A stretch of 64,000 nucleotides of DNA from Trichosphaerium sp. ATCC 40318. Lineage: Eukaryota; Protista; Tubulinea. The notes beneath the pieces were generated by a model. The model was not told the origin of the DNA and did no database searches. It saw only the letters and a list, made by a program, of their open reading frames with translations. The stretch lies in the NCBI GenBank assembly GCA_038496445.1, contig JALMLS010000455.1, positions 930,001-994,000 of the forward strand, written 5' to 3'. A program made the position numbers and the translations under genes. This document shows positions 908-55,200 of this stretch, piece after piece. Each line of letters begins with the position of its first letter. Positions within the stretch are counted from its first letter, which is position 1.

Positions 908-3900
908 ATGGACAATAGTAAATGCGCTGATGATAATGACACTCTTTTGGTTTATCGTAAGTCGGGTTTTATTTGTCACGTTTGTTGCGTTACAGTTTTT
1001 ATTCATTCTTTGAACGCTAGGTAAAAAACTACTTGTCATCCTTGAAGAGGGTTGTTTTTACACAGGAACTATAAAAAGCTTATCGGGTATCAGACATGGT
1101 AAAGGTATACAAATATGGTACAAACAAGGTGTAGAATACCGACAGAAGGTTAAAATGTACATTGGCCACTATTTAGATGGTAAGATGACAGGGCGTGGAA
1201 AGTTGTATTGGGTTGATGGTAGCACATATGATGGAGACTTCTTGGATGGTAAGATGTCAGGGCATGGAGAGTTGTGCTGGCGAGATGGTAGTAAATACAT
1301 TGGTGACTTTTTAGATGGTATGAGAACAGGTAGTGGAGCGTTTTATTGGCCAGTTGAGAATAATTTTACCTTTGGTTCTTCTCGTTTAAAAAAAGCAATT
1401 GTCTCAACAGACTCTGATTTGAGGAATAAAAAATATGTTGGCAAATTTGTGGATGGCAAGAGTTCAGGCACTGGGAAGATGGTTTTCGTAAATGGAGAGA
1501 TATACGCTGGCGAGTTTTTGGATGGAAGGAGGAGAGATGGTTCTGGAGAGTATTATTGGCCGAGTGGTAAAAAATACAGTGGCAACTTTATCAATAGTGA
1601 GATGTCAGGGTTTGGAGAGTTGTGTTGGCCTAATGGCGACAAGTATATTGGCCAATTTGAGAATGGAAAGAGGAATGGTATTGGAGAGTTTTATTCAGCA
1701 AGTGGATATAAAGAAATAGGGTATTTCTCAAACAATAAGTTTCTTAAAATAGAAGAAGGCAAGATTTCTGGAACACCAAATCAAGACACGTTTGTTAAAA
1801 ACATGAACAGAATGCCATCTATTCGTATCAATTCTAAGGATAAGTCATACGAGGATATTAAAGCTGTGGTGTATGTAGAAAGGAAGTATTTCAAAAAAGT
1901 GATTGACTGGATAACTAGCAAGTGTGAAATTCATATGATTGATTCACCTTTACTAGACGGTTTCAAAATGATAAATTGTAAAGACAGTTATATGTTTATC
2001 AGCCATTCTAATTGGGGGTTTACTCAAATAGTTAGAGAGATAAAAGTACACAAAGATACACACAATTGTTTATGTGATGTGGTATTTATTTATGATCTTT
2101 CTGCATGTGATCCTGAGATGTCATTACAACAAGGTACATACCAACAACTCCCTCGTATCCTTTATATTTACAACACTGTTAGTCACAACTGTAGCACGTG
2201 AGATTCCAGAGGCACGTGTAATACCAATACACATGCACAATACAAAAAAAAATAGATCAGAATTTCAAGCTGTATACTACGCCAGCCAAAAAAAACCACC
2301 AATTGTTGCTGCTGCAATTAGTCACAAAGAACATGAATACATGAAGCAACTGAAAGCAAAATTGTTGGTTGTAGGACATGGAGGATCAGGCATGCTAATA
2401 CAATATGAGTTCCTTTACATTAACACAAATATTAGGAAAGACAACTTTAGTAAGGAAATTGTCAGGCGAAAAAGATGGAAGTGTTGATTCAACAGTTGGC
2501 TTTGATACCTCTTCTCTTTTGTGTGTTTGTTTGATATTCTATATGATGTTATACTTACATACATATTAGATATGGTGATTTATCATTCACTGTTTTAGAC
2601 TTTGCTGGACAGATGGAATACAAAGGACTTCACAAGTATTTTTTTGCAAAACAACTTGCCATTTACGTCATTGTTGTAAGATCCTAAAAACCACGTGTTC
2701 AAACCTTTCTCAATATTTATTTTAGATTGACTTATCACTATCAATTGTAGAACAAAAGAAGAACCTTAAGCACTGGGTTCATACCCTTAGCAAGGTTCTG
2801 TATGGACAAGATGCAACATTCTACTCAGTCATTGTTTTTGGATCCAAGTTGGACATCTGTTCAGGAGACTTAGAAGCCAATAAAAAAGTGCTTTACTCCT
2901 TCAATCAGATGAAATCATCAGTGTACCTTGTGTTTTGTTTAGACGGTACTCTTTATTCAAGATTATAAGTTCGTATACTAACGTTCAAAAGGTGTCCCTG
3001 ATCTTGAAAAGCAATTGAAGCGTCAAGCAAAATACATGAAGTCACAATACCCAAAAGTACCAACTCTCTATGATAGAGTACAAAAAGCATTAAAGAAAGC
3101 AGTTGTGAAAAAAGATAGATTGAAGGGTAACATCATATCCATGTACGTTGAAGTATCATACAGACACACTGAATAACATTTTGATAGTGAACAAGTCATC
3201 AAACTATTACCTGAAACTTGTAAAATGGCTCCAATTGAGTTGGTTGCTTCGTTAAATTACCTTCACTCTATTGGTAGTATTATGTTTGATGAGGTACTGC
3301 TGCTTGCCTACAACCTTTTTTATACACTTGAGAATTTGATTTAATTATCCTCTAGTCATCATACATGTTGTGTTTAGACCCTCCCATTCTATCTCGTATT
3401 ATGAGTGTCTTTGTTGCTCCTACAGAACACCTGAACAGACTATTGAATGACAATTCTCGGAATCACTGTGCTGTATTCACTTATGCAGAGGCCCATTATC
3501 GCATCTCAAAAGTATTCAAAAAGTGTACAATGGTTGAAGTGAAGCAAGTGATGAGATTCTTGGTTGAACTGTCATTTTGTGTTCGCTTGACAAAAGAAGA
3601 AAAGGTAACACTTTTGTAGTTGGTACATTATTTACTTATTGGTTAGAAAGTGTATGGCTCAGATGGATATATCATAATTTCATTATTGCCAAAAGCTGAT
3701 ATGTTGTACTTTCCACCCATGACAGAAAAGGAGTTCAGTATTGATTTAGTTAAACGCAGAAATGAGGAATTATCCATATTTTCTGACGTGTTTTACTTGA
3801 GCAAGTTACCAACAAAGTGGAGGTTACTATCATTCATACCTACAAAAGACAATAGGTTTGTAACAAATACAATTAAAACAATCAAGAAAAATTCAAAGAC

Positions 3901-6261
3901 TCAAACAATAGTACGTTTATGTGTTCATTCTCGTTTTGTTCCGCAGTATTGTTATGTTCTTTTTTAATTTGCATAGTCACTTCCTGCTACATATGAGCAC
4001 ATATCAACCGTTTCAAAGTTCTTGGCTTATCAGTTTGCTTCTTTAGAGATATCAACAGATGTGTTTAATAACTTGCAAACAAGATTAAGAGGTAACCGAA
4101 ACAATGTTGTATTTATGCTTACAAAATATCTAGAGTTCCACAACAAAGAGTACCGCCTCTTTTCAAATCTGATTGTATTGAATGATTTTTATGGTAACAC
4201 AATTGTGATGTACTATAATAACCATGCGGTAAACATTGTGATCAGAGGCAAGGTGCCATGGTTATGGAAGGTACGATAGCAGCATGGCGTTTAAGTATTG
4301 AAAACATTCACATAAGTTTAGAAATGTATTGGATCATACTTAGAACTGTTGGAAGGTAACCAAGTTCAACTATGCCCTGCAAGCATTCAAAGCGGTCATA
4401 TTGTTGTTGCTGCAAAACCTCCATATAAGTTTGAACAAACAGGTAACCCCCATATGAACTTGCCTACGCCACCAACTATTTATAGGAGACATCATCACTT
4501 TGTGTCATTTGAAAGAAGGTTTTCCTGTACTGTCAAAAAGCCAAAATAGCTTTTGGAGCAGTCTCCACGGTGAACAATTCTTAACACAAGGTGATTGGAA
4601 AGAAGACATGAACAGGTATCCGGGTTTGAGATGGACTTCTCTCACAAGCAATGAAACAACAAAAGTATGTGTAACACTTTTTCTAACTTGGTATTCATCT
4701 TTGATGACTGATCTAAAAAGGAGCGTTGTGATGAGTACTTGAGAGCTCGCAATATGTTCTACAAGTTTATGGGTACTGAAAGTGAGTCGTTCTTTAAACT
4801 TGAAAAGATTGTATTCTTTGACAATCGAACACTTGAAGCTGCATTCCAAGAAAAATATAATGATCTCATATCCAAAGTACTTCACAAAAAAAACTCAAGT
4901 GAGTCATGTGTACAAAATAGTCACCGTTCATACTAACGGTGATTTAGATTCACACAATGTCAGCATAGATAAAAATAAAATTGAAGCACAAGAACGTACA
5001 ATGAACCATTTGAAAAACTACACTCTTCGTGTTTCTGGTAATGAGCAAATCAATCTCATTGGTGGGTTTCATGGTACAACACAGGTACTGTTCTCATAAC
5101 AACTTGGATATTTATACATTCACAGGCCATCAGTTTCTCAATTGCGACCAACAACTTCAGAGAGCCGACAATGTCAGAAGACAAGAAAGACGAAGGATTC
5201 TTTGGTACTACATTTAAAAACCTTACCTTTCAAGACCATATCTAATAATTTAACAAAGGGAATGGTATCTACTTTACACAATACCCTGATTACGGTACTT
5301 GTCTATAATGTCATGTATATTGGAGTTAATAGAGCTGTTGTAGGAAAGGTATATGCTGAGTGGGAAAAGACAGATACTCCTTGTATGTTGATATCATGGG
5401 TGATGATGGGAAAACCCTATCCAGCTACTGAGGATCCAAACTTTGATGATCCAAACAGCCTGTATGGAAAAGGGTGCAAGGTAATCCATTGAAATTACCC
5501 ATTAGTTATGGTGTAACAATGTAAAAATAGGATGGATACGATTCGCACTATGCTATTGTTAAAAAAAAAACAAGTGCTCGCAATTGCTATCCTTGTAAAA
5601 AACATGAAAAACCAGACTTTGATGAAATTGTTGTATTCTCCAACAAACAAGTATGAACCTCACATTCTTGTTAATAACCCTTTTGGTTTCTTCTAACTAT
5701 TTATTTTAACAGATTCTTCCGAGATACCTTGTTTATTATCAAAGCACAAACACTATCAATCAATCACAGTTTAACATCAAGTACAGAGATGCAAAGTGTC
5801 TCATCTTATGGGTTGATGATAACTTATCTATTGAGAACAAAGAGATTGTGAAGCTATTAAAAGCTCGGCCAAAGAAAACTGAGGTACTTAACAGATATCA
5901 GGTGTTGCAGAGTTACTAACAACAATCTACAAGGTTATGGAAATGATGTCATCCTCAGAGGTTTTGGGATGGCTTCAAAAGTTTAAAGGATATTGTAACA
6001 ACAGGTTACGTATTATAACAAACAGGTACCGTAAAGGTGATGGAGATGAGAATGCAGCAGAGCACTTGGTGAAAAGTATAATTAAGCAAAATAAGAAATG
6101 GAGTAAAATACCTATTCTTGTGTTTTGTGGTATGTGTTTACATCAATCGTAACATACTCATCCTGTTGATTTTAGGAGATAAATCAAATGTCAAGTACCT
6201 CAAAAAGAAATACAAGAATGTTTCAGTCACAAACAGTCCTGCAGATGTATTAGCATTGTAA
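908..6261 (+). CDS. MORN-Roc-COR-PARP-pseudoreceiver Roco protein, copy 1 (multi-exon; divergent N-terminus)
   Basis: ATG 908, intron 957-1020, then MORN units. Roc motifs GHGGSG|KTT, DFAGQMEY, GSKLD. COR-like LNYLHSIGSI..LCLDPPILSRIM..YIIISLLP. PARP motifs FHGT, FGNGIYFT, DGYDSH, DEIVVF..QILPRYLVYY. Receiver-like ILWVDD..IITN..IPILVFC. TAA 6259-6261. Confidence 0.88.
1155..1745 (+). repeat. MORN repeat array of copy 1 (8 units including terminal half-unit, divergent, one insertion)
   Basis: 23-aa units YxGxFxDGKxxGxGxxxWxxG in ORF 1155..2201. Confidence 0.9.
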
Positions 6262-7363: not shown

Positions 7364-8192
7364 TAGAGATGCTGTGATTAGAGCAACTTTTGTTAAGCAG
7401 TTCCCATTCATAGAAAAATTCAATACACTAAGCCATCTGCTTGTACATCAAAAACAGTGTTATATCTTGTAGCTACATGGTTGTAGGTGTTATGCCAGAA
7501 GTTTGGTGCCAGATGCCAAAATATGTTTGTAGACGTACATTTGTAACAACAATGCCGTAAAACTGTTCCAGTAATATGTTAATTGCAAAAAAAGTGACAG
7601 TTGTAATGTCAGCGTAATTGATTGCTTTTGAAGATTTTCCAATTATTACGACAAATCAAGCAACGGCAGCTAAATATAGCTGAAAGGATATAATCTTATG
7701 TGATCTGTGAAATGGTACTTTTAGGCAGCCGTTGGTTCAATTGTCTTGAAATAGTAGAGTTTTTTCATTAAACACTCACAAAAATCCGTGTAAGTACCTA
7801 AAAACAAGTATCTGCGCGTAGGGTAGTACATACATACAATATTTGTATGCTAAAGCTAAAATAAACTTGTGACGCTATTGTAAGCCTTGGTTTTTAAATT
7901 ACAAGTACTGTGATCTTTTGTGCAATAGATGTCTTAATTTCAAGGCTGTGTATAGGCGTCAAACAGAGAAAAATGATTAAATATGGAACATAAAAACAAT
8001 TTTCAGTGATTCTGCGCTACACAATGTTTAATTTTTCTTAATGTTACAACTCCACAAACAACAAAAAGAAAGATCACAATAGATTTAGCACCTGTATTAG
8101 CGTCTATGTAGAGAAGGAACTGCTTAACAAAAGTTGCTCTAGATATCTACTTTTTAGGATCAATAAAAAACTAGATAATCACAACATCTCTA
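7364..8192. mobile_element. Putative non-autonomous TIR element upstream of copy 2
   Basis: Ends TAGAGATG...CATCTCTA; inverted match of tagagatgctgtgatta and gagcaacttttgttaagcagttcc with 8117-8192; the equivalent upstream site of copy 3 (~33015-33050) lacks the insert. Confidence 0.55.
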
Positions 8193-8224
8193 TTGAGCTC
8201 TTATTCTAAACAAACCGCAAAGAA

Positions 8225-8805
8225 AAACTAAATGTATTTAAAAACTCCAAACTGAAGCCTATTTCCGAACTCGAGCGAACAATCGCTTCATAATAAATGC
8301 CCTACGCGCCAGTTCACTAAATTACTACAGTACCGGATGGTAAACCGTTTTGTTCTCGAACAGAACGTCAACTTTAGTAAACTAATCACGTGATTACAAT
8401 AGCAAACACGTTTTGTTTGAGCCTTATTCAGGTACGCTTTAAACGTGAATCTTCGTCTTGGGTTTTGCTTGGTTTAGTTTTTTAGAACTCTGTCGCCTTC
8501 ACTTCTAGTTAAGAGCGGCGATGCAAACTCTCCTGACGCTCTGTAGGGGTTTGGCGTATATCCTCACACAACCAACTGCTAACACACATACAAGCGTTAA
8601 ATACATCGTTTTACAAGGTACAGGTTACGGCTATCGTTTAAAATGACTTTTTTCTTTTTTGTAAACTATCACGTGCACAATTCTTTAGCGAATTTGTTTT
8701 TTTTCGTTTTTTTCTAGCGGAAAATAAAAAACTTTTTCGTTTCTAATTAGTGAACTACAAAGTACGGTTAGTAGGGTTTGCGTTGTTTGCAGTTGATCAT
8801 AAATA
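8225..8805 (+). promoter_or_regulatory. Upstream region shared by copies 2, 3 (32380-33015, minus) and 4 (51650-52200)
   Basis: Shared blocks such as aactcgagcgaacaatcgct, ttagtaaac(a/t)aatcacgtgatta, cctgacgctctgtaggg and cagttgatcataaa; promoter function is inferred from position. Confidence 0.6.
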
Positions 8806-11800
8806 ATGGACAAAAGTAAATCCGCGCGTGGTGCTTTTTTGGTTTTTAGTAAGTTGTTTTTTTGAAGTTGCTAGAGAATGGTTTTTATGCTTACCAAATA
8901 CGTAGGGTATGGAAATGGTAACAAATACGTCGGTGACTTTGTGGATGGCAAGTTAACAGGAAAAGGAAAGTTTTATTGGCCAAGTGGTGCCAAATACAAC
9001 GGTGACTTTTTGGATGATAAGAAAACAGGAAAAGGAGAGTATCATTCGCCAAGTGGTGCCAAATACAGCGGTGACTTTGTGGATGACAAGAGAACAGGAA
9101 AAGGAGAGTATTATTGGCCAGATCATACCAAATACATTGGTGACTTTGTGGATGGCAACAGAACAGGAAAAGGAGAGATTTGTTGGCCAAATGATAAGAA
9201 ATACATCGGTGACTTTGTGGATGGCAAGAGAACAGGAAAGGGAGAGTATTATTGGCCAGATGGTACCAAATACGTCGGTGACTTTGTAGATGGCAAGAGA
9301 ACAGGAAAAGGACAGTTTTATTGGCCAGAACGTAAGAAACACATTGGTGACTTTGTGGATGGTAAGAAAACAGGAAAAGGACAGAAAAATTCACCAAGTG
9401 GTACCAAATACATCGGTGACTTTTTGGATGGCAAGTTAACAGGAAAAGGAGAATATTATTGGTCAGATGGTACCATATACATTGGTGACTTTATGGATGG
9501 CAAGAGAACAGGAAAAGGAGAGTATTATTGGCCAAGTGGTAACAAATACATCGGTGACTTTGTGGATGACAAGATAACAGGAAAAGGAGAATATTATTGG
9601 GCAGATAATACTAAATACATCGGTGACTTTGCGGATGGCGAGAGAACAGGAAAAGGAGAGTATTATTCACTAGATGGTACCAAATACATCGGTGACTTTG
9701 TGGATAGCAAGAGAACAGGAAAGGGAGAGTATTATTCACCAAGGGGTACCAAATACGTTGGTGACTTTGTGGATGGCAAAAAAGCAGGAAAGGGAGAGTT
9801 TTATTGGCCAAGTGGTACCAAATACATTGGTGACTTTGTGGATGATAAGAGAACAGGAAAAGGAGAGTATTATTGGCCATATGGTAAAAAACAAATTGGT
9901 GACTTTGTAGATGGTAAGTTTCTTAATCCGGCAGATACCAAGATTTCTGGAGAACCCAATCAACACACCTTTTTAAAAATGGCAATAATTTGCACCAAAA
10001 GTACACTCACAGACTTTGAAGATGTGTATGTATTTTCAGAAGATATGGAGTATTTCAAGAAGCTGAATGACTGGTTTGTAGCTTCCACATTTATTACTTT
10101 ATCTCCAAATAACAGTTTCAAAATATCATGTCAAAAATCTTTAATTTTTGAGATCCTTTCAAAAGAGACATTCACTCGAGTTGTTGAACAGGTAAGACAA
10201 CACAAAGATGAAAACAATTGTGTCTGTGATGTGGTATTTGTTTATGATCTTTGTTTACATGACCCTGAGATATCATTACATCAAGGTACATACCAACAAG
10301 TATTCTCATATTTAACTGTGTACTCACATTAATACCTTAGTTACAACTGTAGCACGTGAGATTCCAGGGGCACGTGTGATACCAATAAAGATAAACAACA
10401 TTACAAAAAAACAATTTCAAGGTGAATATTACAAAATGTTGTCCCCTCAAAAAAAGCCATCAACTATTGCTTCTGGTATGGATCACACAGAATATGAATA
10501 CATGAAGCAACTGAAAGCAAAATTGTTGGTTGTGGGTCATGGAGGATCAGGTATGCTCAATACAATATGAGTTTCTTTACATTGACGTAAATATTAGGAA
10601 AGACAACTTTAGTAAGGAAATTGTCAGGCGAAAAAGATGAGAATGTTGATTCAACAGTTGGCTTTGATACCTCTTCTCTATTGTGCGTTTGTTTGATAAT
10701 AATATATTTAGATGTTATACTTATATACATATTAGATATGGTGATTTATCATTCACTGTTTTAGACTTTGCTGGACAGATAGAATACAAAGGACTTCACA
10801 AGTATTTTTTCGCTAAACAACTTGCCATTTACATCATTGTTGTAAGACCATGTGTGCAAACATTTTTTTATCAATATTTATTTTAGATCGACTTATCACT
10901 ATCAATTGTGGAACAAAAGAAGCACCTTAAGCACTGGGTTCATACCCTTAGTAAGTTTTTGCGTGGACAAGATGCAACATTCTACTCAGTGATAGTATAT
11001 GGATCCAAGTTGGATATTCATTCAGGAGACTTAGAAGCCAATAAAAAAGTGCTATACTCCTTCAATCAGATGAAATCGTCAGTGTACCTTGTGTTTTGCT
11101 TAGGCGGTACTTGTTTTATTTTAAACTAAGTAAGTCTCCTAATGTTGTTTCAAAAGGTATCTCTGGTCTTGAGAAGCAATTGAAGCGTCAAGCAAAATAC
11201 ATGAAGTCACAATACCCAAAAGTACCAACTCTCTATGACAAAGTACAAAAAGCATTAAAGAAAGCAGTTGCGAAAAAAGATAGATTGAAGGGTAACATCA
11301 TATCAATGTACGTTGAGTATCATCAGACACAGATGAATAACATTTTGATAGTGAACAAGTCATCAAACTATTACCTGAAACTTGTAAAATGGCTCCAATT
11401 GAGTTGGTTGCCTCGTTAAATTACCTTCACTCTATTGGTAGCATTATGTTTGATGAGGTACTGCAACCTTTTCTACGAGCTTGAATTTGATTTAATTATC
11501 CTCTAGTCATCATACATGTTGTGTTTAGACCCTCCCATTCTATCTCGTATTATGAGTGTCTTTGTTGCTCCTACAGAACACCTGAACAGACTATTGAATG
11601 ACAATTCTCGAAATCACTGTGCTGTATTCACTTATGCAGAGGCCCATTATCGCATCTCAAAAGTATTCAAAAAGTGTACAATGGTTGAAGTGAAGCAAGT
11701 GATGAGATTCTTGGTTGAACTGTCATTTTGTGTTCGCTTGACAATAGAAGAAAAGGTAACACTTCATAACACGTTTTTATTGGTACATTGTTTAGTTATG

Positions 11801-14418
11801 GTTTAGAAAGTGTATGGTTCAGATGGATACATCATAATTTCATTATTGCCAAAAGCTGATATGTTGTACTTTCCACCCATGACAGAAAAGGAGTCCAGTA
11901 TCAATCTAGTTAAACACAGAAATGAGAAATTATCCATATTTTCTAAAGTGTTTTACTTGAGCAAGTTACCATCAAAGTGGAGGTTACTATCATTCATACC
12001 TAAAAAAGACAATAGGTTTGTAATCAAGACAATTAAAGCAATCAAGAAAAATTCAAAGACTCAAACAATAGTACGTTTAAACGTTCAGTTTTTGGTACTT
12101 TCTTTTTTTAATTTACATAGTCACTTCCTGGTAAATATGAGCTCATATCAAGCGTTCCAAATTTCTTGGCTTATCAATTTACTTCCCCAGAATTGTCAAT
12201 AGATGTGTTTAATAACTTGCAAACAAGATTAAGAGGTAAGCGCCGAAGTAATGTTGTATTTATGCTTACAAAATATCTAGAGTTCCACAACAAAGAGTTC
12301 CGCCTATTTTCAAATCTGATTGTATTGAATGATTTTTATGGTAACACAATTGTGCTGTACTATAATAACCTTGCCATAAATATTGTGATCAGAGGCAAGG
12401 TGCCATGGTTATGGAAGGTACAATAGCAAATATCATAGTTAAGTATTGTAAGTATTCATCTATGTTTAGAAATGTATTGGATCATACTTAGCACCATTGG
12501 AAGGTAAACAAGTTCAGCTATGCCCTGCAAGTATTCAAAACGGTCACATTGTTGTTGCTACAAAACCTCCATATAAGTTTGAACAAACAGGTAACCACAA
12601 ATGTGAAGGTCAACTTTACTTACAACAATCTGATAGGAGATATTGTCACTGCCTCTCACTTGAAAGAGGGCTTTCCTGTTCTGATAAAAAGCCGAAATAG
12701 CTTTTGGAGCAGTCTCAACGGTGAACAATTCTTAACACAAGGCGATTGGAAACAGAATTCCCAAAAGTATCCAGGTTTGAGATGGACTTCTCTCACAAGC
12801 AACGAAACAACTAAAGTATGTGTAACACTTGGCATTCTGACTTGGTATTTCATCTTTGCTGACTGAATCTAAAAAGGAGCGTTGTGATGAGTACTTGAGA
12901 GCTCGCAATATGTTCTACAAGTTTATGGGTACTGAGAGTGAGTCGTTCTTTAAACTTGAAAAGATTGTATTCTTTGACAATCAAACACTTGAAGCTGCAT
13001 TCCAAAAAAAATATGAACAGCTCGTTGCTAAAGTACTTCAATCTAAATCTTCAGGTAAGTGATTGAACATTTGCTAGCAATTCTTATTAATCCATCATTT
13101 AGATATTAACGATAGCAGTTTGAGTGCAGTTGATAAAAATAAAATTGAAGCACAAGAACGTACAATGAACCATTTGAAAAACTACACTCTTCGTGTTTCT
13201 GGTAATGAGCAAATCAATCTCATTGGTGGGTTTCATGGTACAACAGAGGTACTGTCATCATATTAAGTATGCTACTTATACGCACGCATAGGATACCAGT
13301 TTCTTAATTGCGACAAACAACTTCAGAGAGCCAACAAAATCAAAAGACAAGAAAGATGAAGGATTCTTTGGTACTACATTTAAAAACCTTACCTTTCAAC
13401 ACCACAGCTAACAATTTAACAAAGGGAATGGTATCTACTTTACACAATACCCTGATTACGGTACTTGTCTATAATGTCATGTATATTGGAGTTAATAGAG
13501 CTGTTGTAGGAAAGGTATATGCTGAGTGGGAAAAGACAGATACTCCTTGCATGTTGATATCGTGGGTGATGATGGGAAAACCCTATCCAGCTACTGAGGT
13601 TCCAAGCCCAAACAATTCAAACAGCCTCTATGGAAAAGGATGCAAGGTAATCCATTGAAATTACACACTAGCTGTGGTGTAACAATGTAAAAATAGGATG
13701 GATACGATTCACACTATGCCATTGTTAAAAAAACAACAAGTGCTCGCAATTGTTATCCTTGTAAAAAACATGAAAAACCAGACTTTGATGAAATTGTTGT
13801 ATTCTCCAACAAACAAGTACAGTCGCCACAATTACTATTATTTATTTAACTTTTTTAATCAGATTCTTCCGAGATACCTTGTTTATTATCAAAGCACAAA
13901 CACTATCAATCTTGAACAGTTCAACATCAAGTACAGAGATGCAAAGTGTCTCATCTTATGGGTTGATGATAACTTATCCAATGAGAACAAAGAGATTGTG
14001 AAGCGATTGAAAGCTCGTCCAAAGAAAACTGAGGCACTTAACAGATATCACAGGTGTTGCAGGGTTACTAACAACAATCTACAAGGTTTTGGAAATGATG
14101 TCATCCTCAGAGGTTTTGGCATGGCTTCAAAAGTTTAAAGGATATTGTAACAACAGGCTACGTATTATAACAAACAGGTACCGTAAAGGTGATGGAGATG
14201 AGAATGCAGCAGAGCACTTGGTGAAAAGTATAATTACGCAAAATAAGAAATGGAGTAAAATACCTATTCTTGTGTTTTGTGGTATGTGTTTTACAAACAA
14301 CAATCGTAACATGCTCATATTTTTGATTTTAGGAAACAAATCAAGTGTCAAGTACCTCAAAAAGGAATACAAGAATGTTTCAGTCACAGATAATCCTGCA
14401 GATGTATTAGCTTTGTAA
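8806..14418 (+). CDS. MORN-Roc-COR-PARP-pseudoreceiver Roco protein, copy 2 (longest MORN array; lacks exon 2)
   Basis: ATG 8806 (MDKSKSARGAFLVF), intron 8849-8905 splices in frame into the array; same Roc, COR, PARP and receiver motifs as copy 1; TAA at 14416-14418. Confidence 0.9.
8922..9920 (+). repeat. MORN array of copy 2: 69-bp tandem repeat, 15 GDF units (14 full + terminal half)
   Basis: Repeated aaatacatYggtgactttgtggatg...acaggaaaaggagag...tattggcc; counted in ORF 8878..10332. Confidence 0.95.
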
Positions 14419-14674
14419 CAGTCAGACTGTAATGAATGAGGAAAGACAAAAAGAGCAAAACATTGTAAATAGATTTCAAGTGAAAAAAACTGTTTTTTAC
14501 ACGTGTTTTACTCGTCTTTTGAAAACGTTGATTATGGTTCCCATCCATGACCTCGGTCTACACAGCCAAATAGCTCTTGTAACAACCAGTGAGTTGCATA
14601 ATTCAAGTGAGTTCGATAGGAAAATATCACGTGTTAACTTTCACGATCACTTAACGAAAAAACTGGTCCACGTT

Positions 14675-16605
14675 TTATTCTTCACTAGCCTCGCCGCTAT
14701 ATTCTACATTTACAGAAGAGTAACCCGGTGAGCTTGCTGAATCTGTTAGCAGCGATCTATCAGAGGCGTTTTCTTCTTGCATAGAAAGACATCGTAAAAA
14801 TGAATAAATACCAATAGGTAGCAATAAAATAGGTGAAAGAATTGCAAATCCCGAGACAAGTGTGAGTGTCATGATATTACTTGATGCCCAAAATTTACTG
14901 ACTACCTTTACTAGTTGCTTTTGAATCAGAAACCCATATGCAAACGCATCAAAGAGACCTACAATGGTAAGGGTTTTTGGAGCAAAAAAAGACAAAATGC
15001 AAAAAAAAAACCTTAAAGGCCTCATCTGACATACTAACACTCAAAATGAAAAATAAAAGCTTAGGGTTATTCCTATACTTTGCTTATTGTGTAAAAATCA
15101 AATTGTAATTGTTCAAAGGGCACCCTTTGTTATTGCCTGTCTAGTTGAATTTTTTTTGCAAGAAGTTTTGAACTTGTGTACCTTGTAAGTTCCGTAGAAT
15201 GCTGTATATAACCACCAAAAAGAATACATTACATGCCTCGCCTGTGGAAACGTGGTATATATTATTGATACAATAAGCAACAACATCAGGAATCCAGAAC
15301 AATAAAATGAATGTAAAAAGTAGTATCCTGAGAATAAATGCTCTATGCTTTTTTTTATTCGTTGGAGTGTACGTCAAGTTCCTCATCTTGAAACAGAATG
15401 ACTTAATAAAACGTAATAAAAAACAAGTAAAGGAATGTGTGACTGTTATACAAGGCAAAAAAATTGCACATTTGACGTGTGTGCTCATTGAAGGAGACGG
15501 TTTTTCAAATTCAATGAAAAAAAAACTTCATTTTTTTTCGGCGACCCATGGCTTGTAGAGGAGGAAATAGCTTGAAAATAATTTGTATACGTACCACTAC
15601 TATAACAGATATATACAGTATTATACATAATAGAACTGATGCCAACACAGGTAATAACCATAAGTAAATATGATAAGGTTGTATAGGTGCTGCATATCCT
15701 GCTACGTTAAGTTCCATCCTTGCAATCGCTATTGTCACCGTAACATTTATCAAAGGTAATCCCCATGACATTACATGGAAGGCTATGAAGTATCGGTTCC
15801 ATTTAATATTCGTATCAAGGCGTTTTATAGTCAGCAAATAAATCTAAGAATAAAATAAGAAATAGCCTCAAAAAATAAAAAATGTTTTGACAAGTTTGAC
15901 GGTTATACTATTCTCAAAATATAAGAGTTTAGTATATATCTTGTGAAGTATTGTCGAGTATATAATAACATACAAATGAAAGAAATAAAGATTGGGAGAA
16001 TCTGAATCGTTGAAAAAAGGAAAAGAAAAGAACAAGCTAGAACTTCAAAACCTTCAAAATGTGACGTACAAGCAAATAGAATCCGACACAATTTGTCCAG
16101 ACTATACTAGCTAGAGCACCAAACTGAAAAGTAGCTCGAAAAAGAAGCATAAGCGCTTGACTTTGACCATAAAACTTATCCATTGTTAGAATCAATATTT
16201 TTTCTACAACATTACTAGCAGCCCAAATAAACTCGCTTGATGATATATAAAAAGCCAAGTACTATAACAACCAAAACCCGTCAGTAAACACAACACATGA
16301 ACACATTAAACAAAAGCGCAACAGACACGTACCATCATTTTTCGGACACGTTTTTTATTACTCCGTTTTGGTAAAAGCATAAAAATACACATAACAAAAG
16401 TTGTTCCGTAGAGTGACCTATTAATAAAATAATCACGTGGGATGAACAAGAAGTGATGAAAAAACAAAATTTAGAAGTACATTATCCCGGTTACTAAAGA
16501 AGATATTGTAATAACTCGTCTCTCCACAGGACTGAAAGTTGTTTGACATACACCTCGATTAGTGATATTTGCAGTCTCCATGTCCCCATTGATATCTGTT
16601 ATCAT
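14675..16605 (-). CDS. cAMP-receptor-like / GCR1-type 7TM GPCR
   Basis: Spliced MITDINGDMETANIT.. followed by hydrophobic helices: FYISSSEFIWA, FQFGALASIVWTNCVG, FHVMSWGLP, FILLFWIPD, LRNLQG|LFDAFAYGF; motifs typical of the Dictyostelium CAR/Crl family. Confidence 0.75.
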
Positions 16606-25960: not shown

Positions 25961-26030
25961 AAAAACAAAAAACAAAAAAAAAAAAAACAAAAAAAAAACC
26001 AAAAAAAAACAAAAAAAAAAAACAAAAAAA
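25961..26030 (+). repeat. A-rich (A4-13 C)n tract
   Basis: aaaacaaaaaaacaaaaaaaaaaaaaacaa... directly after the stop of ORF 25692..25961. Confidence 0.8.
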
Positions 26031-30100: not shown

Positions 30101-32379
30101 TCATAATACGAGATAGAATGGGAGGGTCTAAACACAACATGTACGATGACTAGAGGATAATTAAATCAAATTCAAGTGCATAGAAAAGGTTTTAGGTAAG
30201 CAGTACCTCATCAAACATAATGCTACCAATAGAGTGAAGGTAATTTAACGAAGCAACCAACTCAATTGGAGCCATTTTACAAGTTTCAGGTAATAATTTG
30301 ATGACTTGTTCACTATTTTCATGTTATTCATCAGTGTTTCTGTATGATACTTCAACGTACATTGATATGATGTTACCCTTCAATCTATCTTTTTTCACAA
30401 CTGCTTTCTTTAATGCTTTTTGTACTTTGTCATAAAGAGTTGGTACTTTTGGGTATTGTGACTTCATGTATTTTGCTTGATGCTTCAATTGCTTTTCAAG
30501 ATCAGAGATACCTTTTGAAACAACATTAGGAGCCTTGCTTAGTTAAAATAAAACGAGTACCGTCTAAGCAAAACACAAGGTACACTGATGATTTCATCTG
30601 ATTGAAGGAGTATAGTGCTTTTTTATTGTCTTCTAGGTCTCCTGCATGAATATCCAACTTGGATCCATATACTATCACTGAGTAGAATGTTCCATCTTGT
30701 CCACGCAAAAACTTACTAAGGGTATGAACCCAGTGCTTAAGGTGCTTCTTTTGTTCTACAATTGATAGCGATAAGTCGATCTAAAAATAAATATTGATAA
30801 GAAAAGGTTTGAACACGTGGTTTTAGGATCTTACAACAATGACGTAAATAGCAAGTTGTTTTGCGAAAAAATACTTGTGAAGTCCTTTGTATTCCATCTG
30901 TCCAGCAAAGTCTAAAACAGTGAATGATAAATTACCATATCTAATATGTATGTCAGTATAACATCTAAATATATTATTATCAAACACACAATAGAGAAGA
31001 GGTATCAAAGCCAACTGTTGAATCAACACTGTCATCTTTTTCGCCTGACAACATCTTTACTAAAGTTGTCTTTCCTAATATTTACGTTAATGTAAAGAAA
31101 CTCATATTGCTTGAGGATACCTGATCCTCCATGACCCACAACCAACAATTTTGCTTTCAGTTGCTTCATGTATTCATATTCTGTGTGATCCATACCAGAA
31201 GCAATAGTTGATGGCTTTTTTTGAGGGGACAACATTTTGTAATATTCAGTTTGAAATTGTTTTTTTGTAATGTTGTTTATCTTTATTGGTATCACACGTG
31301 CCCCTGGAATCTCACGTGCTACAGTTGTAACTAAGGTATTAATGTGAGTGCACAGTTAAATATGAGAACACTATTGGTATGTACCTTGATGTAATGATAT
31401 CTCAGGGTCATGTAAACAAAGATCATAAACAAATACCACATCACAGGCACAATTGTTTTCATCTGTGTATTGTCTTATCCGTTTGACAACTCGAGTGAAC
31501 ATCTCTTTTGCAACGATCTCAAAAATTAAAGATTTTTGATATGATATTTTGAAACTGTCATTTGGTAAAGTAAAAACCGTGGAAGCTACAAACCAGTCAT
31601 TCAGCTTTTTGAAATACTTGTTATCTTCTGAAAATACATGCACATCTTTAACGTCTGTGGATGTACTTTTGGCGCAAATTATTGGCATTTTGAAAAAGGC
31701 GTGTTGATTGGGTTCTCCAGAAATCTTGGTATCTGCCGGATTAAGAAACTTATTGTGCAAAAAGTCACCAATGTATTTTACGCCATCTGCCGAATAATAC
31801 TCTCCTTTTCCTGTTCTCTTGCCATCCACAAAGTCACCGATGTATTTGGTACCATCTGGCCAATGATACTCTCCTTTTCCTGTTCTCTTGCCATCTACAA
31901 AGTCACCGATGTATTTTTCGCCATTTGGTGAATAATACTCTCCTTTTCCTGTTATCTTGCCATCCGCAAAGTCACCGATGTATTTGGTACCATCTAGCCA
32001 ATAATACTCCCCTTTTCCTGTTATCTTGCCATCCACAAAGTCACCAATGTATTTGGTACCATCTAGGCAATAAAACTCTCCTTTTCCTGTTCTCTTGCCA
32101 TCCACAAAGTCACCGATATATGTGGTACCATTTTCATAACCTATACGTATTTTTGGTAATCATCACATAAAACACTCTCTTACCACTAACATCGTTATCA
32201 CAGTACCATGTCTGTTCGCCTTTACCATGTCGGATACCATTTTTTAAAGTCCCTTTGTAAAAACAACCCTCATCCAGAACGAATATTTTACCTACATAAG
32301 GATTATTGATAACAACTTCAAAAAAAAAAAGCCGCTTACCAAAAACCAAAAGATCGCCACAAGCGGATTTAATTTCCAT
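27189..32379 (-). CDS. MORN-Roc-COR-PARP-pseudoreceiver Roco protein, copy 3 (inverted; intact only if a GA-donor intron is spliced)
   Basis: ATG 32379 (MEIKSACGDLLVF); same exon series and motifs (FHGT, FGKGTYFT, DEIVVF, ILWVDD); stop at 27189; 46-nt GA..AG segment 29330-29375. Confidence 0.82.
31745..32125 (-). repeat. MORN array of copy 3: 6 GDF units
   Basis: 69-bp tandem units in and just upstream of ORF 31371..32105. Confidence 0.92.
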
Positions 32380-51285: not shown

Positions 51286-52200
51286 TTGTGGGCTATGCTT
51301 GCTTTCTGAGGAGTAAAATGTTTAAATATTTAACACCATTTAATTGCAAACAAAAAAACCTTGTGTAACTGTTTGATTACCCAAGATATTCAAGGCATAC
51401 TATAAAGAAGTACCTAACACATTGCAAACTGCGGCGAAAGGCGAAATAAACTTGGTATTCCGAAATAAGCAGTTCCCATAACACAAACATGATGAAAAAT
51501 GATTGAGAGCACGTGCCAACAAAAGAAACATTGGGGCATTGAGGTTAGGAATGTACGTCTCCAAGATCATTCAGGAAATCAACATGTGCATACTTACAGA
51601 AGACAATTAATTTTGAAGGAGTAGAACAACGTAAGCTGATATTTGCTACAAAGTAAATTTATTTAAAAACTCCAAACTGAAACCTATTTTCAAACTCGAG
51701 CGAACAATCGCTTTCAAAATAAATCCCCTATATGTGGGTTCACTAATTTAGCACAGTACCGGGCGGTAAACCGTTTTTGTTCTCGCACAGAACCGTCAAC
51801 ATTAGTAAACAAATCACGTGATTATACAATAGCAAACACTGTCTGTTGGTTTGAGGTCTTATTCAGGTACGCTAGAATTTTGAAACGCGAATCTAGTCTT
51901 GGGTTCGCCTTCGCTTCTTGTTAAGAGTGGGCAATACAAACTCTATCCTGACGCTCTGTAGGGTTTTTGGCTTATATCCTCACGTAACCAACTTGACGCT
52001 TTTACATTTGTACGAGCATTTTACTAGTACAAGTAATTTATCTATCGTTGAAAACACTTTTTGGTTTTTTTGTAAACTTTCACGTGCATAAATTTTAGCC
52101 AATTTTTTTTTTGTTTTCATTTTTGATTAGCTTATTTTTTTTAGCGAATAAAAAAGCACAGCCAGTTGGGGTTTGTGTTGTTTACAGTTGATCATAAACA

Positions 52201-55200
52201 ATGGACAAAAGTAAATCCGCTCAAGGCGATTTTTTAGTTTTTAGTAAGCGTCTTATTGTTTTTTTTGAAGTTGTTATCAATAATCCTTATGTAGGTAAAA
52301 TATTAATTCTGGACAAGGGTTGTTTTTACAAAGGGACTTTAAAAAATGGTATCCGACATGGTAAAGGCGAACAGACATGGTACTGTGATAACGATGTTAG
52401 TGGTAAGAGAGTGTTTTTTGTGATGATTACCAAAAATACATAGGCTATGAAAATGGTAGCAAATACATTGGTGACTTTGTGGATGACAAGAAAACAGGAA
52501 AAGGAGAGTATTATTGGCCAAATGGTAACAAATACATCGGTGACTTTGTGGATGATAAGATAGCAGGAAAAGGAGAGTATTATTGGCCAGATGGTACCAA
52601 ATATATTGGTGACTTTGTGGATTACAAGAGAACAGGAAAAGGAGAGTATTATTGGCCAGATGGTTACAAATACATTGGCGACTTTGTGGATGACAAGAGA
52701 ACAGGAAAAGGAGAGTATTATTGGCCAAATGGTACCAAATACATTGGCGACTTTGTGGATGACAAGTTTACAGGAAAAGGAGAGCTTTATTATTATTGGC
52801 CAGGTGGTAGAAAATACATTGGTGACTTTGTGGATGACAAGTTAACAGGAAAAGGAGAGCTTTATTGGCCAGATGGTAGAAAATACATTGGTGACTTTGT
52901 GGATGACAAGAGAACAGGAAAAGGAGAGTTTTATTGGCCAGATGGTAAAAAATACATTGGTGACTTTGTGGATGGCAAGAGAACAGGAAAAGGAGAGTTT
53001 TATTGGCCAAATGGTAGCAAATACATCGGTGACTTTGTGGATGGCAACAGAACAGGAAAAGGAGAGCATTATTCACCAAGTGGTAGCAAATACATTGGTG
53101 ACTTTGTGGATGGCAAGTTTCTTAATCCGGCAGATACCAAGATTTCTGGAGAACCCAATCAACACGCCTTTTTCAAAATACCAATAATTTATACCAAAAG
53201 TACATCCACAGACATTAAAGATGTGTATGTATTTTTAAAAGATATGAAATATTTCAAGAAGCTGAATGACTGGTTTATAACTCCCACGTTTATTACTTTA
53301 CCAAATGACACTTTCAAAATATCATGTCAAAAATCCTTAATTTTTGAGATCCTTTCAAAAGAGACATTCACTCGAGTTGTTGAACGAATAAGACAACACA
53401 CAGATGAACACAATTGTGTCTGCGATGTGGTATTTGTTTATGATCTTTGTTTACATGACCCTGAGATATCATTACATCAAGGTACACACCAACAGTATTC
53501 TCATATTTAACTGTGCACTCACATTAATACCTTAGTTACAACTGTAGCACGTGAGATTCCAGGGGCACGTGTGATACCAATTAAGATAAATGACATTACA
53601 AAAGAACAATTTCAAGGTGAATATTACAGATCGTTGTCCCCTCAAAAAAAGCCATCAACTATTGCTTCTGGTATGGATCACACAGAATATGAATACATGA
53701 AGCAACTGAAAGCAAAATTGTTGGTTGTGGGTCATGGAGGATCAGGTATCCTCAAGCAATATGAGTTTCTTTACATTAACGTAAATACTAGGAAAGACAA
53801 CTTTAGTAAAGATGTTGTCAGGTGAGAAAGATGACAGTGTTGATTCAACAGTTGGCTTTGATACCTCTTCTCTATTGTGCGTTTGTTTGATATTCTATAT
53901 GAGACATAACACTGACACATGTAGATATGGTAATATATCATTCACTGTTTTAGACTTTGCTGGACAGATGGAATACAAAGGACTTCACAAGTATTTTTTC
54001 ACAAAACAACTTGCCATTTACGTCATTGTCGTACGTCTTAAGACCACGTGCACAAACATTTTCTTATCAATATTTATTTTTAGATTGACTTATCACTATC
54101 AATTGTGGAACAAAAGAAGCACTTGACACACTGGGTTCATACCCTTAGTAAGTTTTTGCGTGGCCAAGATGGAACATTCTACTCAGTGATAGTATATGGA
54201 TCCAAGTTGGATATTCATTCAGGAGACTTAGAAGACAATAAAAAAGCACTATACTCCTTCAATGGGATGAAATCGCCAGTGTACCTTGTGTTTTGCTTAG
54301 ATGGTACTCATTTTATTTTAAACTAAGCAAGTTTCCTAATGTTGTTTCAAAAGGTATCTCTGATCTTGAGAAGCAATTGAAGCGTCAGGCAAAATACATG
54401 AAGTCACAATACCCAAAAGTACCAACTCTTTATGACGAAGTACAAACAGCATTAAAGAAAGCAGTTGTGAAAAAGGATAAATTGAAGGGTAACATCTTAT
54501 CATTGTACGTTGAAGTATCATACATAAACACTGACGAATAACATTTTCATAGTGAACAAGTCATTAAACTATTACCTAAGACATGTAAAATGGCTCCAAT
54601 TGAGTTGGTTGCTTCGTTAAATTACCTTCACTCTATTGGTAGCATTATGTTTGATGAGGTACTGCTGCTTACCTAAAACCTTTTCTTTGTGCTTGAATTT
54701 GATTTAATTATCCTCTAGTCATCACACATGTTGTGTTTAGACCCTCCCATTCTATCTCATATTATGAGTGTCTTTGTTGCTCCTACAGAACACCTAAACA
54801 GACTATTGAATGACAAGTCTAGAAATCACTGTGCTGTATTCACAGATGCAGAGGCCCATTATCGCATCTCAAAGGTATTCAAACAGTGTACAATGGTTGA
54901 AGTGAAGCAAGTGATGAGATTCTTGGTTAAATTGTCATTTTGTGTTCGCTTGACAAAAGAAGAAAAGGTAACACTTTGTAACATATTTTTTTTATTGGTA
55001 CATTATTTACTTACTGTGGTTAGAAAGTGTACGGCTCAGATGGATATGTCATAATTTCATTATTGCCAAAAGCTGATATGTTGTACTTTCCACCTGTGAC
55101 AGAAAAGGAGTCCAGTATCAATCTAGTTAAAGAAGGAAAGGAGAAATTATCCATATTTTCTGAAGTGTTTTACTTGAGCAAGTTGCAAACAGAGTGGAGG

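Follow-up and report, generated by a model that had tools for sequence, protein, structure and literature searches.

The 69-bp coding repeat that opens four neighbouring paralogous genes in Trichosphaerium sp. ATCC 40318 corresponds to a 23-residue MORN unit, and in three of these genes (copies 2-4) a young scaffold, conserved at the DNA level, appears to be combined with a few exposed codons at which replacements run at about three times the silent rate. We give a probability of roughly 55% to the account as a whole, in which a MORN ribbon, turnover of its units, and a replacement excess at exposed codons together would make up a diversifying recognition surface. Arrays that join a scaffold to hypervariable positions are a hallmark of recognition domains in conflicts between host and parasite or between self and non-self, as in the LRRs of NLRs and VLRs and the WD40, ANK, and TPR repeats of fungal NLRs. 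MORN repeats themselves are widespread and functionally obscure, and no report of MORN as a diversifying sensor was found in the literature searched. The genes that host the MORN arrays belong to an amoeba-like eukaryote rich in introns and lie in a 64,000-nucleotide window, by which we mean the whole stretch of DNA analysed.

Repeat arrays and exon structure

The 69-bp period given by TRF is without indels, and the features of the four copies, in coordinates of the window, are as follows.

1021..1739, plus strand: copy 1, degenerate older array of 8 MORN units, joined directly to the cap unit with no intron between
1158-1350: copy 1, TRF 69-bp period (2.8 copies, 71%)
8806..8848, plus strand: copy 2, exon 1 (MDKSKSARGAFLVF, phase 1), from the sequence as aligned with copies 1, 3, and 4
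8849..8905, plus strand: copy 2, single 57-nt GT-AG intron, from the alignment
8906..8922, plus strand: copy 2, N-terminal partial unit (R-YGNGN)
8913-9918: copy 2, TRF 69-bp period (14.6 copies, 83% matches, score 1298)
8923..9888, plus strand: copy 2, array of 14 full 69-bp MORN units, consensus KYIGDFVDGKRTGKGEYYWPDGT (TRF, Pfam, AF2, Foldseek)
9889..9918, plus strand: copy 2, half unit closing the array (KQIGDFVDGK), which brings the GDF count to 15
9919..10285, plus strand: copy 2, linker domain (FLNPADTKISGEPNQH...DPEISLHQ) in the same exon as the array, from the alignment
10353..10886, plus strand: copy 2, putative Roc-type G-domain exons (spliced RNA contigs, Pfam, motifs)
~10549-10595, 10683-10735, and 10842-10886, plus strand: copy 2, introns of the G domain
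31749..32123, minus strand: copy 3, array of 5 full units (running from 32123 to 31779) and a tail half unit
31778-31749, minus strand: copy 3, tail half unit (KYIGDFLHNK), giving a total of 6 GDF
31761-32131, minus strand: copy 3, TRF 69-bp period (5.4 copies)
32184..32291, minus strand: copy 3, small exon with an extra MORN-like cap unit
52295..52402, plus strand: copy 4, small exon with an extra MORN-like cap unit (CFYKGTLKNGIRHGKGEQTWYCDNDVS)
52451-53117: copy 4, TRF 69-bp period (9.6 copies)
52461..53117, plus strand: copy 4, array of 9 full units and a tail half unit (53088-53117)

The full units of copy 2 start in frame at 8923+69i, and copy 4, in which unit 5 has a 6-bp in-frame insertion, contains 10 GDF in total. 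Here, the in-frame unit counts bear out the 15, 6, and 10 GDF units that an earlier note, made from the letters of this DNA, had given for copies 2-4. For copy 1, the eight units claimed there are indeed present as MORN units, though a literal GDF occurs in only two of the eight; this array is broken by a 31-residue insert, and its units share 65-71% DNA identity with those of copies 2-4. The placement of each array within one exon likewise holds, with the amendment that copies 3 and 4 add a MORN-like unit in a separate small exon upstream. In copy 2, the small exon for this cap unit is deleted, and the alignment reveals that the 57-nt intron is a fusion of two introns that the other copies keep apart (1 and 2), with the frame left intact. 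A splice junction of the cap-exon type is present in one RNA contig (loose end at 9674), while the related sequence in two small runs consists of RNA-derived contigs of paralogs with 90-99% identity, by which splicing is confirmed and family members are seen to be expressed.

Tandem repeats misassemble easily, and the differences in array length might in principle stem from units that were collapsed or expanded during assembly. We consider this very improbable, as there are no identical unit pairs (the nearest differ at 3/69 bases) and the frame is kept in every array, as are the conserved half units at its N- and C-terminal ends. Moreover, the longest exact repeat inside the arrays is 34-43 nt, and so ordinary reads would place every unit uniquely.

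MORN fold and unit turnover

The Pfam MORN profile (PF02493) matched the copy 2 array in 10 stretches (E=1e-66, 217 bits), and a phmmer search of the PDB returned MORN1 chains (E=4e-31); the 23-residue unit follows the MORN pattern Y-x-G-x-[WF] ... G-x-G, with a glycine in its hairpin loop. In the AF2 model of the array (pLDDT 96.9), there are two strands per unit (residues 1-7 and 10-18), which are joined by a turn (8-9) and followed by a loop (19-23), and comparison by Foldseek with the MORN1 crystal structures 6t4d, 6t4r, and 6t6q gave TM scores of 0.84-0.90 (0.86-0.90 for the target TM) and a rmsd of 1.6-3.1. As modelled, then, the array is a canonical MORN single-layer antiparallel β-hairpin ribbon. 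The same 23-residue unit and fold are found in MORN1, MORN4/retinophilin, the junctophilins, and RSPH1, as is a partner-binding groove lined by Tyr/Trp (here Tyr/Phe) and LxY residues. In contrast, the arrays of these canonical MORN proteins are old and heterogeneous, with a unit number that is stable across species, whereas those described here consist of units recently copied from a single type (86% DNA identity), differ in length between paralogs, and contain fast-evolving positions. A word-indexed search for relatives of the array recovered only generic MORN proteins (≤55% identity), and scanning metagenome and viral contigs for exact patterns turned up nothing.

Downstream of the arrays, the gene bodies of copies 2-4 are 90-98% identical, yet the arrays themselves hold 15, 6, and 10 units. 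We found no positional orthology of units between arrays (identity of 0.858 in register vs 0.860 out of register) and no shared unit order (DP test p = 0.82-1.0), nor is there a within-array excess of unit identity (0.852 within arrays vs 0.860 between arrays). Given that positional orthology and common order are both lacking, the units would have turned over since the paralogs diverged, a conclusion that is supported indirectly. Some multi-base variants, TGG to TCA among them, recur in three arrays. Of the unequal recombination proposed in the earlier note, it is this past turnover that stands, by way of the unit counts and the missing orthology and order; comparison of units within one genome gave no signs that such recombination is still ongoing in the arrays, every unit being distinct and exact tracts extending over 34-48 nt at most. 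In copy 4, a higher-order 351-bp period was no better than the 69-bp one (89% matches for both in TRF), and duplication of a 5-unit block was ruled out by a neighbour analysis, in which none appeared.

As for the history of the arrays, one unit type (KYIGDFVDGKRTGKGEYYWPDGT) may have been amplified in the ancestor of copies 2-4, where it would have replaced an older heterogeneous array of the kind that copy 1 retains. Thereafter, units would have been gained, lost, and reordered via unequal exchange or slippage to give 6, 10, and 15 units, a step that we infer because the unit counts differ and a common order is absent. In the old array of copy 1, only Y2, G4, F6, G13, G15, W19, and G22 persist. 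That D5, D8, T12, and K14 do not vary among the units of copies 2-4 therefore reflects recent common origin.

Variable codons and selection

Variation among the units is concentrated and not evenly spread, just as had been claimed from the sequence, with 29/69 bases of the unit invariant vs 6.2 expected (simulated maximum of 14) and a per-site count variance of 10.8 vs 2.4 expected under uniform variation. The two blocks described as near-invariant have 0-2 mismatches per unit, all of the quoted variable triplets occur in the units, and the GAC, GAT, and GGA codons are the same in 27/27 units of copies 2-4. Change was also said to be mostly amino-acid altering and proves to be so, for, among the codons that depart from the consensus, 103 differ non-synonymously and 27 synonymously (79% amino-acid changing), with a unit-to-unit identity that is lower for protein (0.74) than for DNA (0.86). 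Mean protein identity of the units is 0.69 in copy 2, 0.79 in copy 3, and 0.81 in copy 4. The replacements at codon 23 are chemically radical (T/K/A/N/S/Y/R/E/V), and in copy 2 both the structural Gly22 and W19 are replaced, each in 4/14 units. Measured against the consensus, G>A (43), C>T (24), and A>G (22) changes predominate, and this spectrum, being without adenine bias, rules out DGR-like adenine-targeted mutagenesis of the units.

For the selection tests, the alignment comprised 23 codons of 27 non-independent units from one genome, with the tree drawn from the same 69 bases. Overall omega is near 1 (M0 1.2, piN/piS 0.78, parsimony 0.93). When M2a was compared with M1a on the codon tree, the LRT was 24-25 under three frequency models; with the nucleotide tree, it was 19.6. 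Omega2 was 3.2-3.7 and p2 0.19-0.34, which puts ~30% of codons at an omega of ~3-4. Codons 11, 21, and 23 had posteriors >0.99 under all three frequency models; codon 17 was nearly robust, and codons 9 and 20 were less sure. Parsimony on two trees counted 11-12 non-synonymous changes at codon 11, 12-14 at codon 21, and 14.5-15.5 at codon 23, with ~25 synonymous changes over 14 synonymous sites on the whole tree. Simulations under M1a reached at most a LRT of 12.5 with free recombination between codons (24 runs) and 6.4 without recombination (10 runs), and the observed value lay above 34/34 of these, a number of simulations that bounds p only at ~0.03 and for which the null tail is heavier than chi-square. 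The array of copy 2 alone gave a LRT of 12.1, and those of copies 3 and 4 without copy 2 gave 18.2 (omega2 4.8). Taken together, the "constrained plus neutral" model is rejected, and the diversifying selection that per-site dN/dS had been expected to reveal is supported statistically, with a few codons seeming to replace ~3x faster than silent sites. The data set behind this signal is small and the model carries caveats; site models take one synonymous rate, and multi-nucleotide changes and conversion between units can inflate them.

Alternatively, constraint could be relaxed, with fold residues purified and exposed positions drifting in young redundant arrays without adaptive diversification; an omega >1 would then be only apparent, produced by the small number of sites, by conversion between units, by multi-nucleotide changes, or by synonymous variation that is depressed. 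Relaxation over the whole N-terminal half is a live alternative because the linker beside the array also has a dN/dS of 0.8-1.85 among copies 2-4, with pN close to intron divergence. It further agrees with the overall omega, a gene-body pN/pS that is often 0.3-0.7 or higher, the exon loss and the Gly22 and Trp19 substitutions of copy 2, and the one null simulation at 12.5. Still, we judge it possible but on the unlikely side, as M1a is rejected beyond every simulation, those with free recombination included, and the signal is repeated by copies 3 and 4 once copy 2 is removed. Moreover, D5, K10, T12, K14, and E16, which are structurally free in copy 1, barely change, while codons 11, 21, and 23 change 11-15 times, and drift alone would not yield such a split.

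When placed on the AF2 secondary structure, the selected sites fall in the inter-hairpin loop (20-23), the turn (9), and strand 2 (11 and 17), with the robust ones found at both edges of the ribbon (as mapped by secondary structure and homology, not coordinates). In junctophilin, position 10 packs between Tyr/Trp walls and is the counterpart of unit position 11 (PMC8916002), while the L and Y of the LxY motif, the counterparts of unit positions 17 and 19, line the aromatic groove that mediates binding between MORN4 and Myo3a (PMC7725318). By homology, codons 11 and 17 would thus be on the partner-binding aromatic groove, with 21 and 23 in the adjoining hairpin loop. The binding surface proposed in the earlier note is thereby a candidate, for which secondary structure and homology put sites 11 and 17 in the aromatic groove known from MORN1, junctophilin, and MORN4 and sites 20-23 in the loop.

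A structural or scaffolding module (spacer, oligomerisation rod, or membrane or cytoskeleton tether), its length tuned by unit number and its variable positions having no role in recognition, would also suit such a ribbon. MORN1 builds elongated dimers and meshes, numerous MORN proteins serve as scaffolds in axonemes or junctions (PMC7725318), and paralogs that are otherwise alike show a 2.5-fold difference in unit number. A pure spacer, however, predicts neither an omega of ~3 at particular groove and loop positions nor the radical replacements at codon 23, and we regard this explanation as quite unlikely. Because homology puts the fast codons (11, 21, and 23, followed by 17 and, with less certainty, 9 and 20) on or beside the groove that MORN4 and junctophilin use for partner binding, the array is most likely a partner- or ligand-recognition surface whose specificity would be diversifying among units and paralogs. 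For partner binding by the ribbon, this reading predicts the groove positions and the adjoining hairpin loop.

Switch domain and comparison with known systems

In the proposed arrangement, the MORN ribbon would form the N-terminus in a family that is lineage-specific, tandemly duplicated, and endowed with a Roc-type GTPase in its body. The linker in between is, on the strength of a profile search, lineage-specific, with no true homologs in 1.84 billion representatives; the single profile match, a dockerin-repeat, was spurious. For this linker, the AF2 pLDDT is 39 and the Atlas feature scores are ≤0.73. In the G domain of copy 2, a G1 motif is split by an intron between LLVVGHGGSG and KTTL, and a G3 motif (DFAGQ) is also present. 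The Pfam Roc match is weak (E=0.0017, 19 bits against a cut-off of 27) and covers one 67-residue exon fragment, while the exons downstream of the array had no Pfam match to NACHT or NB-ARC. On these motifs, the switch domain looks Roc-like, not NACHT. Neither COR nor PARP was matched in Pfam or the PDB with single exon fragments, which are too short for deciding COR.

ROCO proteins (LRRK2, Dictyostelium Roco) are laid out as a repeat domain, Roc-COR, and an output domain (kinase). The genes described here resemble them in having an N-terminal repeat array before a putative Roc-type G domain (weak Pfam match, motifs) and differ in having MORN in place of LRR, ANK, or ARM. With the LRRs of plant and animal NLRs and with lamprey VLRs, the likeness is by analogy only, in that repeats of the solenoid type keep their scaffold fixed and have exposed residues that are diversified; the fold is different, and VLR diversity arises somatically via gene conversion, whereas here there is no hint of somatic assembly.

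Closer in kind are the fungal HNWD/NWD genes of Podospora, to which the earlier note had likened the arrays. Shared features are a one-exon tandem coding repeat, a paralogous family with an NTPase switch, a varying unit number, reshuffling without positional orthology, and, against a conserved scaffold, a few codons per unit with an omega >1 (Paoletti 2007, PMC1805685; Dyrka 2014, PMC4986451). Nevertheless, the fungal repeats are WD40, ANK, and TPR and stand at the C-terminus, while here a MORN β-hairpin ribbon is N-terminal and the switch Roc-like and not NACHT/NB-ARC, and the difference in unit number is known between paralogs of one genome only. The Dyrka 2014 study of fungal NLR-like repeats does not mention MORN, and for highly internally conserved (HIC) repeats it asks that units share 85% or more of their amino acids across a minimum of 100 residues (PMC4986451), against 74% for the present units (69-81% per array). 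Hence, the analogy is apt in kind but does not extend to unit conservation or the switch domain.

More tentatively, recognition in a large family of Roc GTPases with ADP-ribosyltransferase output could fall to the MORN arrays as a diversifying domain, the family acting as NLR-like receptors for innate immunity or conflict in an amoeba-like protist, though we think this rather improbable. If true, MORN, Roc-COR, and PARP would be parts of a receptor system in roles not previously known for them, and the repeat dynamics would be convergent with those of fungal HNWD and plant and animal NLRs. Should the signal hold family-wide, a new fold would join the evolvable receptor scaffolds, and the result would point to a surveillance system, based on Roc GTPases and possibly ADP-ribosylating, among protists whose lineage is a host to giant viruses and intracellular bacteria. 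Lastly, the best database matches to the array are bacterial MORN proteins (41-55% identity), which come from prokaryotes and show no relationship to the family here beyond the array. Many of them carry TIR (PF13676, PF01582) or caspase (PF00656) domains, and so MORN arrays recur next to effector domains of the death/immunity type.

Repeat arrays and their units

The window is eukaryotic in character, having a GC content of ~36% and short GT-AG introns (45-67 nt). In four stretches of it, TRF revealed an indel-free 69-bp period. These are the MORN arrays of four paralogous genes (copies 1-4), each followed by a linker and a putative Roc-type G domain, with the following coordinates.

from ~908, + strand: copy 1, paralogous gene
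1158-1350, + strand: copy 1 array (TRF 2.8 copies, 71% matches)
1740-2132: copy 1 linker
from 8806, + strand: copy 2, paralogous gene
8913-9918, + strand: copy 2 array (TRF 14.6 copies, 83% matches)
9919-10285, + strand: copy 2 linker
from 32379, - strand: copy 3, paralogous gene
32291-32184, - strand: copy 3 cap-unit exon
31761-32131, - strand: copy 3 array (TRF 5.4 copies)
31748-31386, - strand: copy 3 linker
from 52201, + strand: copy 4, paralogous gene
52295-52402, + strand: copy 4 cap-unit exon
52451-53117, + strand: copy 4 array (TRF 9.6 copies)
53118-53480: copy 4 linker

Just past the 3' side of copy 3, there is also a homopolymer-like A-rich run of 70 bases (25961-26030, 82% A). Read in frame, the unit has a 23-codon consensus (KYIGDFVDGKRTGKGEYYWPDGT), and the GDF counts of 8, 15, 6, and 10 in copies 1-4 given by the earlier note were borne out. 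Here, copy 2 holds 14 full units starting at 8923 and a tail half unit, copy 4 nine full units and a tail, and copy 3 five and a tail; copy 1 has eight diverged units (two with a literal GDF) and a 31-residue interruption in its array. The blocks described as nearly invariant in copies 2-4 indeed have 0-2 mismatches per unit, and every variable triplet quoted is present. The sole length variant among 28 full units is unit 5 of copy 4 (52737-52811), in which an in-frame 6-bp insertion (ELYYYWPGG) gives a 25-residue MORN unit.

The claim that all units lie within one exon holds for the arrays, but not for an additional MORN-like cap unit (CFYKGTLKNGIRHGKGEQTWY), which in copies 3 and 4 is coded by a small separate exon whose splice is visible in an RNA contig. 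In copy 1, no intron separates this cap unit from the array, to which it is fused (1021-1157). In copy 2 its exon is deleted with the reading frame intact, the single 57-nt intron at 8849-8905 being a fusion of the two introns that flank the exon in other copies.

Fold, variable positions, and tests of selection

Over 27 full units taken from copies 2-4, 29 of the 69 bases never vary, as against 6.2 expected under uniform placement (simulated maximum of 14), residues G4, D5, F6, D8, G13, K14, and G15 are invariant, and the codons GAC, TTT, GAT, and GGA are identical in every unit. The bulk of change falls in codons 23, 21, 11, 17, 9, 20, and 19, and, as the earlier note had stated, it is mostly amino-acid changing (103 of 130 codon differences from consensus are non-synonymous), with units less alike in protein (identity 0.74) than in DNA (0.86). 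The observation of a 69-bp repeat with a conserved scaffold and variable positions is confirmed. Because only Y2, G4, F6, G13, G15, W19, and G22 persist in the old array of copy 1, the extra invariance in copies 2-4 stems from their units' recent descent from a single unit type and not from structural necessity. A DGR-like process was ruled out, as the adenine bias is absent from the substitution spectrum.

The array is a genuine MORN ribbon: it matches Pfam MORN (E=1e-66) and MORN1 crystal chains (phmmer, E=4e-31), and its AlphaFold2 model (26 homologs, pLDDT 96.9) aligns by Foldseek with MORN1 crystal structures (TM 0.84-0.90, rmsd 1.6-3.1 Å). Each modeled unit has two strands (residues 1-7 and 10-18) joined by a tight turn (8-9), and a loop (19-23) that leads into the following hairpin. 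Codons 20-23 accordingly lie in the inter-hairpin loop, codon 9 in the tight turn, and codons 11 and 17 on the second strand. Moreover, codon 11 corresponds to position 10 in the junctophilin register, occupied by Arg, Lys, or Gln with its side chain packed between Tyr1 and Trp5 walls (PMC8916002), and codons 17 and 19 to L and Y, respectively, in the LxY motif of the MORN1 register, which together with YEGEW lines a longitudinal aromatic groove, reported to be used by MORN4 to bind the myosin-3a tail (PMC7725318). It is thus plausible that the fast sites line this binding groove and its rim, which agrees with the proposed binding surface as far as placement by secondary structure and homology goes. 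We regard the array as a putative ligand sensor only tentatively.

Tree-free estimates over units gave piS of 0.173 and piN of 0.136, with piN reaching 0.33-0.51 at codons 11, 21, and 23. For the per-site dN/dS analysis that had been proposed as a check, we used our own implementation of Goldman-Yang site models, whose M0 matches the IQ-TREE likelihood and omega (1.21), and which presuppose a uniform synonymous rate and codon changes of one base at a time. On the codon ML tree, M2a (with an omega > 1 class) improved on M1a (constrained plus neutral) with a LRT of 24-25 under F3x4, F1x4, and equal frequencies, placing 19-34% of codons at omega2 of 3.5-3.7; with a nucleotide-model tree, the LRT was 19.6. 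Codons 11, 21, and 23 are robust, their posterior staying at 0.99 or more whichever of the three frequency models is used; codon 17 ranges from 0.76 to 0.99, and support for codons 9, 20, and 7 is model-dependent. As the alignment is tiny and units may recombine, null data sets were generated from the consensus under the fitted M1a and analyzed with the same pipeline. The observed LRT exceeded those of all 34 simulations, both where tip labels had been permuted codon by codon as a stand-in for free recombination (n=24, maximum 12.5) and without recombination (n=10, maximum 6.4). The copy 2 array alone gave a LRT of 12.1, and those of copies 3 and 4 together 18.2 (omega2 4.8). Parsimony on two trees put the non-synonymous changes at 12-14 for codon 21, 14.5-15.5 for codon 23, and 11-12 for codon 11, with ~25 synonymous changes in total on 14 synonymous sites.

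The whole family evolves fast, and a relaxation of constraint on the N-terminal half has to be taken seriously as an alternative. Among copies 2-4, the linker, coded in the same exon as the array, has a dN/dS of 0.8-1.85 and a pN close to intron divergence (0.07-0.11), and gene-body segments have pN/pS of roughly 0.3-1. Copy 2 is the most worn, having lost an exon and with Gly22 and Trp19 each replaced in 4 of 14 units. We put the probability that positive selection really acts on some codons at about 0.55-0.6.

Probable unit turnover and paralog history

Beyond the arrays in the 3' direction, copies 2-4 share 90-98% identity even with introns counted (intron divergence of 0.07-0.11), yet their arrays have 6, 10, and 15 units. 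Unit identity is alike within (0.852) and between (0.860) arrays, and in (0.858) and out of (0.860) register, collinear unit order between arrays scored no better than shuffled orders (p = 0.82-1.0), and two-base variants (e.g., TGG to TCA, codon 19) are common to all three arrays. This fits units having been gained, lost, and reshuffled during or after gene divergence, which we infer from the sequences rather than observe, and we consider it quite probable that units have turned over. Among units of copies 2-4, no two are identical (closest pairs have at least 3 differences), and the longest exact tracts of only 34-48 nt argue against assembly collapse and leave little substrate for ongoing unequal crossover.

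Copies 1 and 2 (1740-6260 versus 9919-14420) form a mosaic, ~66% identical in the MORN and linker portion and 91-97% over 10477-12400, a pattern that hints at either gene conversion in the effector half or a replaced sensor half. In their upstream (promoter) sequence (8192-8873, 33026-32310, and 51650-52276, respectively), copies 2-4 are only 72-73% identical with many indels, versus 90-98% for the gene bodies; the bodies may understate the age of the duplication, having been homogenized by conversion. A C-terminal divergence hot spot (13385-13576 and homologous parts) is 75% identical between copies 3 and 4, 84% between copies 2 and 3, and 97% between copies 2 and 1, with pN at or above pS for copies 3 and 4 (0.177 versus 0.121). 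The 3' end of copy 2 (14341-14700) is unrelated to copies 3 and 4 (36-62% identity), which stay 93-95% identical to each other. The paralogs differ in their 3' ends or flanks.

Comparison with known repeat systems and relatives

The closest known behavior to that of the arrays of copies 2-4 is found in the highly internally conserved WD40, ANK, and TPR repeats of fungal NLR-like proteins, which evolve in concert, vary in repeat number, and have a few surface codons under positive selection (PMC1805685, PMC4986451). The HNWD analogy drawn in the earlier note stands as regards the signal of selection, and suggestively for shuffling. However, the arrays seem a variant of the fungal type and not a member, because unit protein identity is 74% (below the fungal 85% criterion), the NTPase is not of STAND type, and repeat-number variation is seen here between paralogs only. 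On the whole, the interpretation of shuffling with a diversified binding surface is partly supported. In the literature searched, we found no report of a MORN array as a diversifying recognition domain, and MORN is absent from PMC4986451 and PMC7159879.

Between array and G domain, the linker (~122 residues, 46 positions invariant across all four copies) has no true homolog among 1.84 billion representative proteins, and its AF2 model is poor (pLDDT 39). Exons past it carry two motifs of Roc type, GHGGSG|KTTL, interrupted by an intron that RNA contigs confirm, and DFAGQ, along with a weak Pfam Roc match; COR and PARP-like domains were not confirmed in searches with single exon fragments. The nearest public MORN arrays (P0003, P0007, P0010, P0028, P0048, and P0053, among others) are 41-55% identical and mostly bacterial. 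Many are fused to TIR (PF13676, PF01582) or caspase (PF00656) domains, and MORN arrays may thus have the role of a sensor module in the conflict systems of prokaryotes.
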